DNA of 64,000 bases from Syncephalis fuscata S228 (Eukaryota > Fungi > Zoopagomycota), in contig JAHLTZ010000046.1 in NCBI GenBank assembly GCA_025786725.1, forward strand, positions 62,001 through 126,000, given 5' to 3'. Positions within the stretch are counted from its first letter, which is position 1; each line of letters opens with the position of its first letter. Made by a program: the position numbers and the translations under genes. Shown one piece after another: positions 24,380 through 38,476 of the stretch. The notes under the pieces were generated by a model that saw only the letters and a program-made list of their open reading frames with translations, was not told where the DNA came from and did no database searches.

Positions 24380-24506
24380 ACCAACTTTACAAGTGAGCTG
24401 GTGAGCCCAGACACCATACGAAGCCGAATTGTCTTCAGTCTTGCAGTATCCACAGTTAGAAATATTATCGCCAGTCGGCGTGACCATTGATTCTTCTATG
24501 GACATT
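24380..24506 (-). pseudogene. Truncated ATE1 5' fragment (exon 1 only)
   Basis: Identical to 36824-36949 ([25 protein letters not shown]); identity stops at the intron-1 donor. Confidence 0.85.
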
Positions 24507-24682
24507 GCAACGTTTCGGCAGTGAAATACTGTAAGACGATAGACAGAAAGGATGTGTACAAGTTGAATAACGAGTTAAAGTGGCAGTGACAGCAATGGCA
24601 ATGACAACGATCACTGGTTACATCAATAATTAATTAATTAACTATGGCTGGCCATTAATGTTCAATACTTTTTGATCCATGA

Positions 24683-26704
24683 TTAGTGAAAATACCAACG
24701 TAGCATACGTGGCCATGTATTTTGAAAAATCAATTGGAGTATTTCGTAACGAGCTAGTTCAAAGTCCTTAAGCGTTAATCGATTTTGTCGATAAGCATTT
24801 GTCAGGTCCCTGCGACATTCAAATGTAATATTGATTTCATTGCGTGATGACGGACTGATAAAGTCCTCATAAATTAAATTAATTTCTCTATCTAATATAT
24901 CTTTTGTTTTTGCACTCATTGGTGGCCTTGTTGCTTCGTGTTCTTCTAATATTTCGTCAATTGAGCTAATCGAGCCACTGTGAGTATTGGCAGCAGATAA
25001 TGAAGGTCTAACCGGATGGCTCGTGTTGTCACGAGGTGATAAGCTATTTTGAATAGATACTTTTGATAATTTAGTAAATGGCTGGCAATTAGCAATAAAC
25101 ATACCTTGCTGTAAGGGTCTACCGTGATTTCTATATATTGGATGATGCATAAGTGTACTGTAATAAGGTCTGTAACTTTCGTCACGGTTATGAATCAACG
25201 TTTGATCCAGAAAGCGCAATCTTCGCAAAAACGACAAATTTTCATTTGTAAAATCACGAATGGAATACTGATGCAGCTGAACATTTATTAGATTCAATTA
25301 AATAAAGTATGAGTACAATAATTGACTTACTGCTAGTTGTATTTCCCTATAATCTATTGTCTCCATAAACACTTCAAAGTCACTAATGTCGCCTGAGGTT
25401 CTATTCGACACTATATTTTCTACCGTTTTTTTAGCTTGATGTTGTTGTTTACGTAAAATACGCCGTTCATAATACAAATATCCCATTGGCCAGGTAAAGG
25501 ACATTATATGACTAAAGAATAGCAATATTTCAAGCAATATTTCTGCAGGAAATGCTCTACGAGCTTTAATCCAGGCAGGACTATCGATATAGCGAATCAG
25601 AAAAAATGAAATTATACAAAGCATTCCTATTAAATATTGAAAAATAAATTCGTTGCGGATACCATAGGCATCTGTTACATTCCACATAATAATTCCAATA
25701 GCGGGAAAAATAACACCAAAAAAGCCGCCAAATCCAACGTTGATCAGCTTAAATGACCAGTTAGCAGAGCATATGGGCAGCTGTGGATATGTTTTGCTCG
25801 AATAAACAGGATCTAATAAAATAACCATAACAACAGTAATGGCAGTGAAAAATGTAATAACAAAAACTACATATACATGATATCGCGGTTCCAAGATTTG
25901 GATTTTTGCTATGTATTTTACAAAACGCTGAAATGGTGTAATTTTATCTTGCCACGCCAATTTCGATGGTCTTATGTTTCCATTTTGTGACTTATGGCGT
26001 CCAAGTAAAACGTCCCACCAAGGCCTACGTGGTCTAGGCCCTATTGTATTGGATAAAGGCAAAATCTCAATGGCCGTACTTGGAACTGGTAACTCAGTAT
26101 CATCACGAAACATTCTGGGTAATGCCAAAGGTGAATTATCTGTTTGTTTTGTGCAAATATTGCCAGCCTTTACAGTGCAGTTTCCAACTCCAAACCATGT
26201 TGCCCGTCTAGCATGTCGTCTTGCACGTGTGGCTAATTGCTCATCTGCTGATGTAGGTAGCGGTAACAGTTCTGGATTATATTCTCTCAATGCATCTAGT
26301 GAGCTGCGTCGAATTTCAGTTCTTTTTATTTGTTCTTTTTCAAATAGGCGTCGATTGATTTCATAAAGCCACATCACTCGCCAAAATTTAAGACCCTGGC
26401 TTGTTGCCCAAAGAGCCAGCCCAACAGATAGAATAGAAAAATATATTTTACATGTATAAATATTACGATTCTGTATTGCAACAAATGTATTAGTTGCAAG
26501 CATAGCGCTGCCTAGTACATGGATAACAGCCAGAAATCTACCGCGATAACGTATTGCTTGTTCTTTTCGGGATAAAATTAAAAAAATGAGCAAATCTATA
26601 ATAAATATTGCATTGATCACTCCACATAGAGTATAAAAAAGTGGTGCATTGTCAAAGAACGTCCCAAAACTCGCTTGGGGAATTAATCCCACAGTTGTAC
26701 TCAT
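24683..26704 (-). CDS. 7TM-RGS protein copy 1 (GprK/AtRGS1-type architecture); intron 25277-25330
   Basis: Seven TMs with IRYRG, TM3 Cys and DAYGIRNE. Removing a 54-nt GTAAGT..CAG intron joins the two track ORFs into an RGS box (RDFTNENLSFL..IYEDFISPSSRNEINI..FELARYEILQLIFQNTWPR). Confidence 0.85.
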
Positions 26705-34627: not shown

Positions 34628-36647
34628 ATGAGTACAACTGTGGGATTAATTCCCCAAGCGAGTTTTGGGACGTTCTTTGACAATGCACCACTTTTTTATA
34701 CTCTATGTGGAGTGATCAATGCAATATTTATTATAGATTTGCTCATTTTTTTAATTTTATCCCGAAAAGAACAAGCAATACGTTATCGCGGTAGATTTCT
34801 GGCTGTTATCCATGTGCTAGGCACCGTTATGCTTACAACTAATACATTTGTTGCAATACAGAATCGTAATGCTTATTCTTGCGCCGTCTTTTTTTCAATA
34901 TCTCTGTTGGGCTGGCTCTTTGGGCAACAAGCCAGGGTCTTAAATTTTGGCGACTAATGTGGCTTTATGAAATCAATCGACACTTATTTGAAAAAGAACA
35001 AATAAGAAGAACTGAAATTCGACGCAGCTCACTAGATGCATTGAGAGAATATAATCCAGAACTATTACCGCTACCTACATCAGCAGACGAGCAATTAGCC
35101 ACACGTGCAAGACGACATGCTAGACGGGCAACATGGTCTGGAGTTGGAAACTGCACTGTAAAGGCTGGCAATATTTGCACAAAACAAACAGATAATTCAC
35201 CTTTGGCATTACCCAGAATGTTTCGTGATGATACTGAGTTACCAGTTCCAAGTACGGCCATTGAGATTTTGCCTTTATCCAATACAATAGAGCCTAGACC
35301 ACGTAGGCCTTGGTGGGACGTTTTACTTGGACGCCATAAGTCACAAAATGGAGACATAAGACCATCGAAATTGGTGTGGCAAGATAAAATTACACCATTT
35401 CAGCGTTTTGTAAAATACATAGCAAAATCCAAATCTTGGAACCGCGATATCATGTATATGTAGTTTTTGTTATTACATTTTTCACTGCCATGTATGTTGT
35501 TATGGTCATTTTACTGGATCCTGTTTATTCGATCAAAACATATCCACAGCTGCCCATATGCTCTGGTAGTTGGTCATTTAAGCTGCCTAACATTGGAATT
35601 GGCGCCTTTTATGGCATAATTTTTCCCGCTATTGGAATTATTGTGTGGAATGTAACAGATGCCTATGGTATTCGCAACGAAATTATTTTTCAATATTTAA
35701 TAGGAGTTATTTGCATGGCTCCATTTTTTCTAATTCGCTATATCGATAGTCCTGCCTGGGTTATAGCTCGTACCAAATTCCCTTTTGAACTATTAATTGA
35801 AATATTGCTATTCTTTAGTCATATAATGTCCTTTACCTGGCCAATGGGATATTTATATTATGAACGGCGTATTTTACGTAAACAACAACATCAAGCTAAA
35901 AAAACGGTAGAAAATATAGTGTCGAATAGAACCTCAGGCGACATTAGTGACTTTGAAGTGTTTATGGAGACAATAGATTATAGGGAAATACAACTAGCAG
36001 TAAGTCAACTATTGTACTCATACTTTATTTAATTGAATCTAATAAATGTTCAGCTGCATCAGTATTCCATTCGTGATTTTACAAATGAAAATTTGTCGTT
36101 TTTGCGAAGATTGCGCTTTCTGGATCAAACGTTGATTCATAACCGTGACGAAAGTTACAGACCTTATTACAGTACACTTATGCATCATCCAATATATAGA
36201 AATCACGGTAGACCCTTACAGCAAGGTATGTTTATTGCTAATTGCCAGCCATCTACTAAATTATCAAAAGTATCTATTCAAAATAGCTTATCACCTCGTG
36301 ACAACACGAGCCATCCGGTTAGACCTTCATTATCTGCTGCCAATACTCACAGTGGCTCGATTAGCTCAATTGACGAAATATTAGAAGAACACGAAGCAAC
36401 AAGGCCACCAATGAGTGCAAAAACAAAAGATATATTAGATAGAGAAATTAATTTAATTTATGAGGACTTTATCAGTCCGTCATCACGCAATGAAATCAAT
36501 ATTACATTTGAATGTCGCAGGGACCTGACAAATGCTTATCGACAAAATCGATTAACGCTTAAGGACTTTGAACTAGCTCGTTACGAAATACTCCAATTGA
36601 TTTTTCAAAATACATGGCCACGTATGCTACGTTGGTATTTTCACTAA
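34628..36647 (+). CDS. 7TM-RGS protein copy 3; two apparent 1-nt deletions (about 34901 and 35427); intron 36000-36053
   Basis: Near-identical to copy 1 with patches matching copy 2; each frame break is repaired by one base. Confidence 0.8.
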
Positions 36648-36823
36648 TCATGGATCAAAAAGTATTGAACATTAATGGCCAGCCATAGTTAATTAATTAA
36701 TTATTGATGTAACCAGTGATCGTTTCATTGCCATTGCTGTCACTGCCACTTTAACTCGTTATTCAACTTGTACACATCCTTTCTGTCTATCGTCTTACAG
36801 TATTTCACTGCCGAAACGTTGCA

Positions 36824-38476
36824 ATGTCCATAGAAGAATCAATGGTCACGCCGACTGGCGATAATATTTCTAACTGTGGATACTGCAAGACTGAAGACAA
36901 TTCGGCTTCGTATGGTGTCTGGGCTCACCAGCTCACTTGTAAAGTTGGTATATCAAGCAAACAAAGCTTATTACTCATACAAATACTATTTAGGACTACC
37001 AAATGTTTATTAATCGTGGCTGGCGAAGGTAGATTCGACTGAATGCAACAAACCAATATACTGAATTTAACTTGAAATAGATCTGGAGCATATTTATACA
37101 AGCCAAATCAACGAGATAGCTGTTGTGCGGCCTACGCTATTCGGTAAGAATTTCTAGCTAGATTAAATACAAATACTAATATCATCGAATAGATTGGATG
37201 TCGGGCATTTTCAATTGGAAAAAAGCCATAAGAAAATAATTAAAAAAGTGAATAAATACTTACATAATGGTCGTATTTACCACGGCAACAATACAAAAAC
37301 GTAAGTAACTAGTAATCAATAATTTGAATAATTATAATTTATTATAAAAGTCAAGATACCAAAACACTTGAACAACTTATCCATATGGCTGAACAAGACA
37401 CTGATCGCCAATTTAAGGTAAAATGGCGATAGTTACATTTACTTTATTAATCTGCTCTATATAGATTGTTACAAAACGGTCATCTCTAGACCAGGACACA
37501 TTCGATATTTATTATAAATACCAAACCAATATTCACAAGGATAAACCAGAAGAGATTAGCGTGGACTCGTTTAAACGGTTTCTAGTTGATTCACCACTAA
37601 TTGTAAGTATAAATACTAGTAATAGAATAAAACTAATGATATGTATCAGCCTGAGGAAAGAGATGACTGGCCTGTACCAGGACTGGGATCTTTTCATCAA
37701 AAATACTATTTAGAAGACCAATTAATTGCGGTAGCTGTAATTGATATTTTACCCGAATGTGTATCATCAGTCTATTTCATGTATGATCCTGAGTTTGCCG
37801 AGTTGGGCCTTGGTAAATACAGTGCGCTACGTGAGATTATACTCACCAAGTCATTATCCCGCTATGACTCATCTATTAAATACTATTGTATGGGTAAGCT
37901 ATAAAAAGTATATTACTGCCAAAAATAGTAGTGCATTTAACTATATTAACCATTGGTATAGGACTATATATTCATACTTGTGTTAAAATGCGGTATAAAG
38001 GACAGTACAAACCATCTGAATTACTGGATCCAGTAAGTTATAGCAATTTGTAATTGATATTTATGTTATTTATCATTTGTCTATTAATAGGAAACATATA
38101 TCTGGAATCCATTAGCAAATTATTTACCGCATTTTGACACTTATAAATACGTTTCACTTTCTTCTACCGGGTCACTGGCCATTGATGCAATGACCGCTAG
38201 CACCGATACAGACCAACCCGGTCCAGGTATCACTGATTGGAAACAATTAACCATAAACGATATTGACGGTGTCCTCGCTATATATAAGCGACACATGGTC
38301 AATGCATCAGTAAGTAGTGACAAAAATGACAAGTAGATGTATGCTAACAAACAATTAATATATATGTGCATATATAGAATATACGCGATCGACATGCTAA
38401 AGAATCAGTTCTACAGTATGTAGCAGCAGTAGGACAGCCATTGGCCGATAACATGATTGTAGCCATTATTCACTAA
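36824..38476 (+). CDS. ATE1: Arginyl-tRNA--protein transferase
   Basis: [93 protein letters not shown]. Confidence 0.95.

Follow-up and report, generated by a model that had tools for sequence, protein, structure and literature searches.

Does a short array of receptor genes that exchange sequence with one another shuffle what a fungus can sense, or does it record ordinary exchange between neighbouring paralogs? The question is raised by a window of 64,000 nucleotides (nt; the whole stretch of DNA analysed, positions 62,001 to 126,000 of contig JAHLTZ010000046.1, assembly GCA_025786725.1) from Syncephalis fuscata S228, a mycoparasite of the Zoopagomycota. The window holds three paralogs that are each predicted to join a seven-transmembrane (7TM) domain to a regulator of G-protein signalling (RGS) box, namely copies 1 (26704-24683) and 2 (32320-30299) on the minus strand and copy 3 (34628-36647) on the plus strand. 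An original prediction, made from the letters alone, had correctly placed these genes and quoted peptides that we could all locate in the array, and had proposed that conversion between inverted repeats diversifies their ligand-facing segments upon a fixed G-protein output. Using the single available set of three array sequences, from one assembly of 29.36 Mb in 371 contigs, we found that the copies have undergone ectopic gene conversion and that their divergence is biased to outward-facing segments. We consider it probable that the array is a lineage-specific triplication under ordinary conversion, in which selection on the sensing surface probably preserved the islands of divergence; we found no support for a switch in host recognition.

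Gene conversion among the three copies

The three copies were aligned over 2325 columns, with pairwise identities of 92.3, 96.6 and 92.5%, and the lengths of identical runs were compared with those of 5000 shuffles. The longest runs, 418 nt between copies 1 and 2, 471 nt between copies 1 and 3 and 244 nt between copies 2 and 3, were reached in 0 of the 5000 shuffles, and the runs of sites at which copies 1 and 3, 2 and 3, or 1 and 2 agree were each significant (P<=0.004), a result that depends partly on the copy 3 consensus. The original prediction had named an even spread of differences as evidence against itself; we found strong clustering instead. Tracts between copies 1 and 2 were called with a two-state model, which gave islands with 67/358, 70/318 and 33/130 differences per nt and homogenised tracts with 1/440, 4/304 and 1/469 (Table 1). 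Fourfold-degenerate sites followed the same division, with 0/64 differences in the long second intracellular loop (residues 128-265) and 1/53 in RGS residues 43-197, compared to 9/36, 7/17 and 2/8 in the islands.

Purifying selection was rejected as the source of this identity, since silent, intronic and pseudogenic sites are identical as well and the loop shows little conservation across species: it is only 36% identical to that of the S. plumigaleata ortholog, and so the identity of the paralogous loops does not come from protein constraint. Behind copy 2, a non-functional fragment of ATE1 (arginyl-tRNA-protein transferase) matches the intact gene with 100% identity along 456 nt, introns included. 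The duplicated SP1 and SP2 genes, which lie in the same region, are not homogenised and hold no identical run longer than 55 nt. Converted and unconverted tracts did not differ in GC content (0.37 and 0.36), and a search of the whole S. fuscata genome found no further donor copies of the array receptor.

Gene conversion was thus predicted correctly, as silent sites, intron and ATE1 fragment are homogenised while the SP1/SP2 pair is not. Every pair, whether direct or inverted, has exchanged sequence, and it is copies 1 and 2, the direct pair, that have in common the longest identical stretch of coding sequence; the inverted geometry once invoked as a special cause is thus unnecessary. The loop, the C-terminal RGS half and a 3' spacer, described earlier as essentially identical, are indeed near-identical, but the loop is fully so only between copies 1 and 2, copy 3 carrying six private transitions there, and the supposed spacer is really the 3' flank followed by the beginning of ATE1, of which copy 1 has exon 1 behind it and copy 2 has exons 1-3. 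Concerted evolution of neighbouring paralogs is an already-known kind of process.

Divergence is biased outward

Outer segments, comprising the N-terminus, the extracellular loops (ECLs) and the outer halves of the transmembrane helices (TMs), were set from AlphaFold helices, and their enrichment was assessed by circular-shift tests, which keep the clustering of differences. Copies 1 and 2 differ at 53 of 146 outer residues vs 30 of 509 inner ones (circular-shift P 0.0015-0.009 for replacements, 0.014-0.023 for silent differences and 0.005-0.027 for tract states). Divergent tracts take up 82% of outer and 28% of inner nucleotides in this pair (P 0.027), and 94% and 28%, respectively, in the union of all pairs (P 0.013); the bias between copies 1 and 2 holds without copy 3. 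The ligand-side clustering proposed at the outset is therefore borne out for the N-terminus, the extracellular loops and the outer helix halves, but not for ECL3, where copies 1 and 2 are identical (0/14 residues differ) and where, as in TM7, the differences are private to copy 3.

Within the islands, the ratio of replacement to silent substitution rates (dN/dS) was 0.59 in outer and 0.20 in inner segments (Fisher P 0.010). With three recombining sequences per-site tests of dN/dS are impossible, and no bulk dN/dS above 1 was found; outer-segment values of 0.59-0.74 do not support diversifying selection, and the proportion of replacement differences (pN) exceeded that of silent ones (pS) solely in a stretch of 19 poorly alignable N-terminal codons.

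The output side proved largely, though not wholly, fixed. In copy 2, 13 of the 45 residues in the first RGS half differ, with a pS of 0.59, close to that of ECL2 (0.66), and this stretch holds the equivalent of the RGS4 alpha3-alpha4 loop motif, which we take to contact G-alpha. As the E-N core of the first RGS half is the same in all copies and the residues flanking it vary, the notion of a fixed G-protein output survives for most of the box and fails for this part of copy 2. The islands point to a likely ligand pocket at ECL1 and the top of TM3 and at ECL2 and the top of TM5, and the array offers a small, clean case in which conversion marks those parts of an orphan receptor that may differ.

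The mosaic of copy 3 and its consensus

Copy 3 matches copy 1 at 132 sites and copy 2 at 37, with 24 switches between the two states compared to 58 expected (P<5e-5). Its predicted mosaic structure is therefore real in so far as it has significant copy 1-like and copy 2-like tracts, but it is not a pure mixture, since 34 sites, clustered in TM6-TM7, are private. It also carries 1-nt deletions near 34899 and 35424, which are frameshifts, and near 36724; for the analysis the deleted positions were filled with gaps or X. All three fall on columns that vary between copies 1 and 2 (7.7% of columns), a coincidence with a chance of 0.0005-0.005 that was noticed after the fact. The frameshifts are probably consensus errors caused by conflict between two alleles or between reads from two copies, and would then be no evidence of a pseudogene. 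We set aside copy 3 as a certain pseudogene donor because HIS4 has the same kind of deletion.

The HIS4 exons, compared with S. plumigaleata, contain three 1-nt deletions (16909, 17211 and 18830), two of them at third codon positions, which are likely consensus errors; similar deletions occur in neighbouring genes of the S. plumigaleata assembly. Some small contigs of S. fuscata match parts of large ones along their whole length at 99.2-99.3% identity, with differences in single-nucleotide polymorphisms and microsatellite lengths, and the strain is therefore heterozygous. Contigs C103 and C242, for example, represent the other haplotype of parts of C306 and C223 (99.2-99.3%), and the first 233 nt of C242 have an inverted match 7 kb away. 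Three of four Zoopagomycota were reported to be non-haploid (PMC6784888); we found no literature on the ploidy of S. fuscata and, in the assembly, no second haplotype of the array locus. The copy 3 sequence is a collapsed, error-containing consensus whose fine mosaic is not fully trustworthy, and single-site switches in it may be partly artificial.

Synteny and the order of duplication

In S. plumigaleata the gene order is HIS4, MDH, SP(-), one receptor(+), ATE1, Vps26, Vps53 and CDC73, which is collinear with the window on either side of the array, the receptor being single-copy there. Copy 3 adjoins the intact ATE1 in this order and therefore occupies the ancestral position. Synteny shows that the ancestral locus consisted of SP(-), a single 7TM-RGS gene(+) and ATE1(+). 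An old inverted duplication of the unit of SP, receptor and ATE1 5' part would then have produced copy 2 and SP2, and a later inverted duplication of the 2.8-kb copy 3 unit may have produced copy 1. SP1 and SP2 differ at 21/77 fourfold sites (27%), like unconverted receptor tracts (15-41%), and the 500 nt upstream of copies 1 and 3 differ at a single position. Contig C334 holds a 73% relic of the 3' flank of copy 2 together with a decayed ATE1 fragment, and so this flank is old. Of the C334 relics (L028:5044-5649 and 2883-3396), the second matches DNA downstream of copy 1, and the receptor gene is absent there.

Selection, neutrality or artefact

Under the explanation that we favour, triplication followed by ordinary conversion, homology-directed copying has overwritten tracts of 0.1-0.8 kb in all three pairs, down to an allelic level of difference. 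Such tracts would survive where overwriting is harmless (the long loop, the RGS insert and C-terminal half, and the flanks) and selection would eliminate them, or low identity prevent them, where the copies differ functionally, presumably for the most part in the outward-facing segments and in the first RGS half of copy 2; new chimeras would arise over evolutionary time as a by-product, without a dedicated switch. A second 7TM-RGS trio of the same genome, described below, provides a parallel, with a homogenised 3' block and a 98.7% identical inverted pair. Several points weigh against this explanation: it draws on one assembly and three sequences; selection against conversion is read from the positions of about four islands; topology accounts for the islands only in part, since island C lies on the intracellular side and copies 1 and 2 share a homogenised ECL3; a dN/dS below 1 would be expected from relaxed constraint on loops no less than from functional divergence; and the order of duplication is not firmly datable because conversion erases it.

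It could instead be that conversion is real and the islands are merely weakly constrained loops that diverged past the recombination threshold with no ligand selection, and that redundancy or decay may affect at least one of the copies, copy 3 being then a young pseudogene. We regard this as unlikely. The least constrained segment, the loop with its 36% identity to the ortholog, is the most homogenised one, which is the opposite of what a threshold predicts, and copies 1 and 2 are intact, with a dN/dS of 0.20 at inner island sites. Decay of copy 3 would accord with its nine isolated private transitions (five replacement, three silent and one in the intron) and its two frameshifts, but the latter are better read as errors. 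The early TGA in SP2, the bulk dN/dS below 1 everywhere and the intracellular position of island C also suit a neutral history, as do two further tests: in the 7TM core silent differences are not significantly biased outward (P 0.16-0.21) and replacements only marginally so (P 0.03-0.07), and rate asymmetry measured against the S. plumigaleata outgroup is not significant (P 0.2-1).

It is very improbable that assembly alone, by collapsing two alleles or merging copy 1 reads with copy 2 reads, produced the copy 3 mosaic and some of the homogeneity. Each copy has flanking sequence of its own, and on either side the block keeps the gene order of S. plumigaleata, which also excludes that the copies are haplotypes of one gene; the 34 private sites of copy 3 are clustered and codon-sensible in TM6-TM7, and no mixture of copies 1 and 2 yields them; and the pattern between copies 1 and 2 holds without copy 3. 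The placement of 3/3 copy 3 deletions at columns variable between copies 1 and 2, the presence of alternate haplotype contigs elsewhere and of none for the array, and the three deletions in HIS4 do point to assembly, and a partial contribution at single sites is likely enough for us to give it about an even chance.

Active diversification, in which conversion or inversion between the arms reshuffles the sensing segments and varies host or non-self recognition in populations or cultures, we consider highly doubtful: the outward bias, the mycoparasitic habit, the inferred ability of a crossover in a tract shared by copy 3 and copy 1 or 2 to invert the centre and swap 5' halves, and the deletions at variable sites, which could mean tracts segregating between two alleles, would all suit it, but we saw no recombinase, no array of cassettes, no set of silent donors and no boundary motif that recurs, only three copies exist and the sister-species ortholog is single-copy, dN/dS does not exceed 1 except in the 19 poorly alignable codons, and tracts run across ATE1 and promoter DNA irrespective of receptor modules. 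There is only a slim prospect that such arm exchange is still segregating or somatic, that chimeras with new sensing alter host choice and that the locus belongs, with other receptor clusters, to a genome-wide shuffling of receptors in Zoopagales. If chimeras did change host recognition, the locus would matter far more.

Comparison with known converting gene families

In mammalian TLR1 and TLR6, gene conversion homogenises the intracellular signalling part while the ligand-side part diverges (PMC2077338). The array likewise consists of neighbouring receptor paralogs with a homogenised signalling part and a divergent ligand side; however, TLR1/TLR6 show a single contiguous 300-aa block that recurs in nine species, whereas here the tracts alternate along the 7TM topology and involve three copies in one lineage. 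Population samples of the Tigriopus GOT1 paralogs revealed islands of divergence under ongoing conversion, with formation of chimeras (PMC3728101). The array resembles them in its mosaic of identical and highly diverged tracts, in which rare conversion of diverged tracts would give new combinations, but was studied in a single assembly rather than in population samples. The Teshima-Innan model reportedly accounts for such islands in paralogs that continue to convert each other.

In trypanosome VSG, Borrelia vls and Pneumocystis Msg, antigens or receptors vary through a programmed conversion of segments. The array shares with these systems variable segments between constant ones and copy-to-copy transfer, but has no expression site, no silent cassette array and three copies only. 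In place of a silent donor array with a single expression site, each of the three copies has its own upstream region and start, and the dN/dS of the variable segments was 0.59-0.74 rather than above 1. The array works like the TLR1/TLR6 and GOT1 cases and fails the tests of programmed variation that were run.

A second 7TM-RGS trio in the same genome

Another clade of 7TM-RGS proteins, with 35-38% amino-acid identity to the array, likewise has three copies (C361:765410-767419, C317:109189-114132 and C317:133490-138440). The two on C317 are inverted and 98.7% identical over 4.95 kb; the one with 1-nt deletions lies next to ribulose-phosphate epimerase, where synteny places the gene, and the duplication also includes an F-box-like gene. 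The copy on C361, a contig with a paralog recorded as KAI9596998.1, is ~85% identical through the 7TM domain and long loop and ~98% identical from the last RGS codons onward, over 1.5 kb. The long loop is not homogenised in this trio, and therefore its homogenisation is not a rule of the family. At the S. plumigaleata and S. pseudoplumigaleata loci this receptor is single-copy. Basidiobolus meristosporus has 12 related 7TM-RGS-like proteins of at least 90% identity, several with consecutive accessions on one contig.

Receptor architecture and family placement

In every copy exons of 458 and 197 codons flank a 54-nt phase-0 GT-AG intron with an in-frame TAA. A bacterial-style reading of two open reading frames (ORFs) per copy was rejected, as the TAA sits inside the intron, and the intron position is the same in S. 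plumigaleata and in orthologs annotated as fused 7TM-RGS proteins; the union of both domains in one polypeptide depends on the predicted in-frame splicing of this intron. AlphaFold modelled seven helices in exon 1 (20-47, 56-78, 85-, 273-297, 316-341, 349-372 and 387-; predicted template-modelling score, pTM, 0.68; helix confidence, as predicted local distance difference test, pLDDT, mostly 85-95), with the 160-aa loop after TM3 disordered and with C85 and the almost invariant C312 as a TM3-ECL2 pair.

Exon 1 of copy 1 matched Pfam 7tm_3 weakly (E 3e-4), and the score of 20.8 bits lies under the PF00003 cut-off of 33.5. The closest folds in Foldseek were class C 7TM domains (GPR156, mGlu), all at E>0.1 (best E 0.13), and a protein-atlas comparison gave 0.91 to 7tm_3-like clusters of Zoopagomycota; the array receptors have no Venus flytrap domain. 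Their relation to class C G-protein-coupled receptors (GPCRs) is one of resemblance, not membership.

Exon 2 scored just under the PF00615 cut-off of 23.9 (22.4 bits, E 1.6e-4) because its RGS box is split. RGS structures made up 22 of 23 PDB matches (best E 7e-5, RGS18), two related proteins exceed the PF00615 cut-off, and the S. fuscata genome contains 31 RGS-box matches. Residues that we take to be G-alpha contacts, as in RGS4, are present in all copies: the first-half E-N pair, the EINI-motif Asn and the last Arg. The Asp ahead of that Arg is replaced by Asn. Judging from their family, the proteins are most likely membrane-anchored, possibly ligand-regulated GTPase-activating proteins for G-alpha.

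Relatives at E<1e-30 came only from Syncephalis and Thamnocephalis, with weak matches in Basidiobolus and Chytridium; a profile search of the 90% database returned only 2 proteins, and a metagenome scan found no closer relatives. The ten best named matches included no Aspergillus GprK or RGS1 protein, eight weaker matches being unnamed. Early-branching fungi have been reported to have the 7TM-RGS architecture (PMC3971589), and in Aspergillus oryzae G-alpha is negatively regulated by the RGS domains of class VI (PMC10794492). Like fungal class VI GprK-like proteins, Arabidopsis RGS1 and the 7TM-RGS proteins of chytrids, filastereans and ichthyosporeans, the array receptors have seven predicted helices followed by an RGS box; unlike these, they have a 160-aa second intracellular loop and an RGS insert of ~75 aa. 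The apparent likeness is one of architecture, and orthology to GprK or RGS1 is not claimed. A search of the available literature library for work combining Syncephalis with RGS and GPCR found none; the family is an unstudied one from a mycoparasite.

Features of the array and its neighbours

Table 1. Positions of receptor parts, conversion tracts and adjoining genes in the window
Feature	Positions	Strand	Description
Copy 1 exon 1	25331..26704	-	7TM domain and 160-aa second intracellular loop, 458 aa
Copy 1 intron	25277..25330	-	54-nt phase-0 GT-AG, contains in-frame TAA; predicted splicing
Copy 1 exon 2	24683..25276	-	RGS box split by ~75-aa insert, 197 aa
Copy 2 exon 1	30947..32320	-	85% aa identity to copy 1
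Copy 2 intron	30893..30946	-	54 nt
Copy 2 exon 2	30299..30892	-	first 42 codons diverged, remainder protein-identical
Copy 3 exon 1	34628..35999	+	ancestral position adjoining intact ATE1; 1-nt deletions near 34899 and 35424
Copy 3 intron	36000..36053	+	54 nt
Copy 3 exon 2	36054..36647	+	
Copy 3 upstream region	34117..34627	+	common to copy 1 (26705-27215); 1 difference in 500 nt adjoining ATG
Homogenised tract 1	25907..26346	-	long intracellular loop; copies 1/2, 1 difference in 440 nt
Homogenised tract 2	25285..25588	-	ECL3, TM7, C-tail, most of intron; copies 1/2, 4 in 304 nt
Homogenised tract 3	24380..25154	-	RGS insert, RGS C-half, 3' flank, ATE1 exon 1; copies 1/2, 3 in 775 nt
Divergent island A	26347..26704	-	N-terminus to TM3; copies 1/2, 67 in 358 nt
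Divergent island B	25589..25906	-	TM4, ECL2, TM5, TM6; copies 1/2, 70 in 318 nt
Divergent island C	25155..25284	-	intron end and first RGS half, intracellular; copies 1/2, 33 in 130 nt
Truncated ATE1 behind copy 1	24380..24505	-	exon 1 only
Truncated ATE1 behind copy 2	29766..30121	-	exons 1-3 with introns, 100% identical to intact gene
Intact ATE1 (arginyl-tRNA-protein transferase)	36824..38161	+	PF04377 E 8e-22, synteny; 3' end approximate
SP1, putative secreted protein	21419..22267	-	ancestral position; ortholog in S. plumigaleata
SP2	33129..33764	+	inverted duplicate of SP1, 63% aa, not homogenised

SP1 has no Pfam match, and its putative secretion is suggested by a hydrophobic N-terminus. 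It contains three 87-nt internal repeats (21724-22054) and a C-terminal glycine/alanine-rich hydrophobic segment, and its S. plumigaleata ortholog stands head-to-head with the receptor. SP2 has a TGA 14 codons ahead of the SP1-equivalent stop, at a Cys codon of SP1, and the 14 codons downstream are still similar (33762-33803); this TGA is either a recent nonsense change or an error.

A dispersed repeat at 29000-29585 has at least 40 copies of 75-86% identity, often paired in inverted orientation at distances of 4-16 kb, and a DNA transposon may carry it as its terminal repeat; the copy at 29000-29585 adjoins the 3' flank of copy 2 and a 34-nt hairpin (28859-28956) and is without a mate in the window. 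Two more dispersed repeat families lie between SP1 and copy 1 (22955-23150 and 23283-24067). Near the ends of the window, two mutually related ORFs (2992-3804 and 61990-62904) belong to another multi-helix membrane family.

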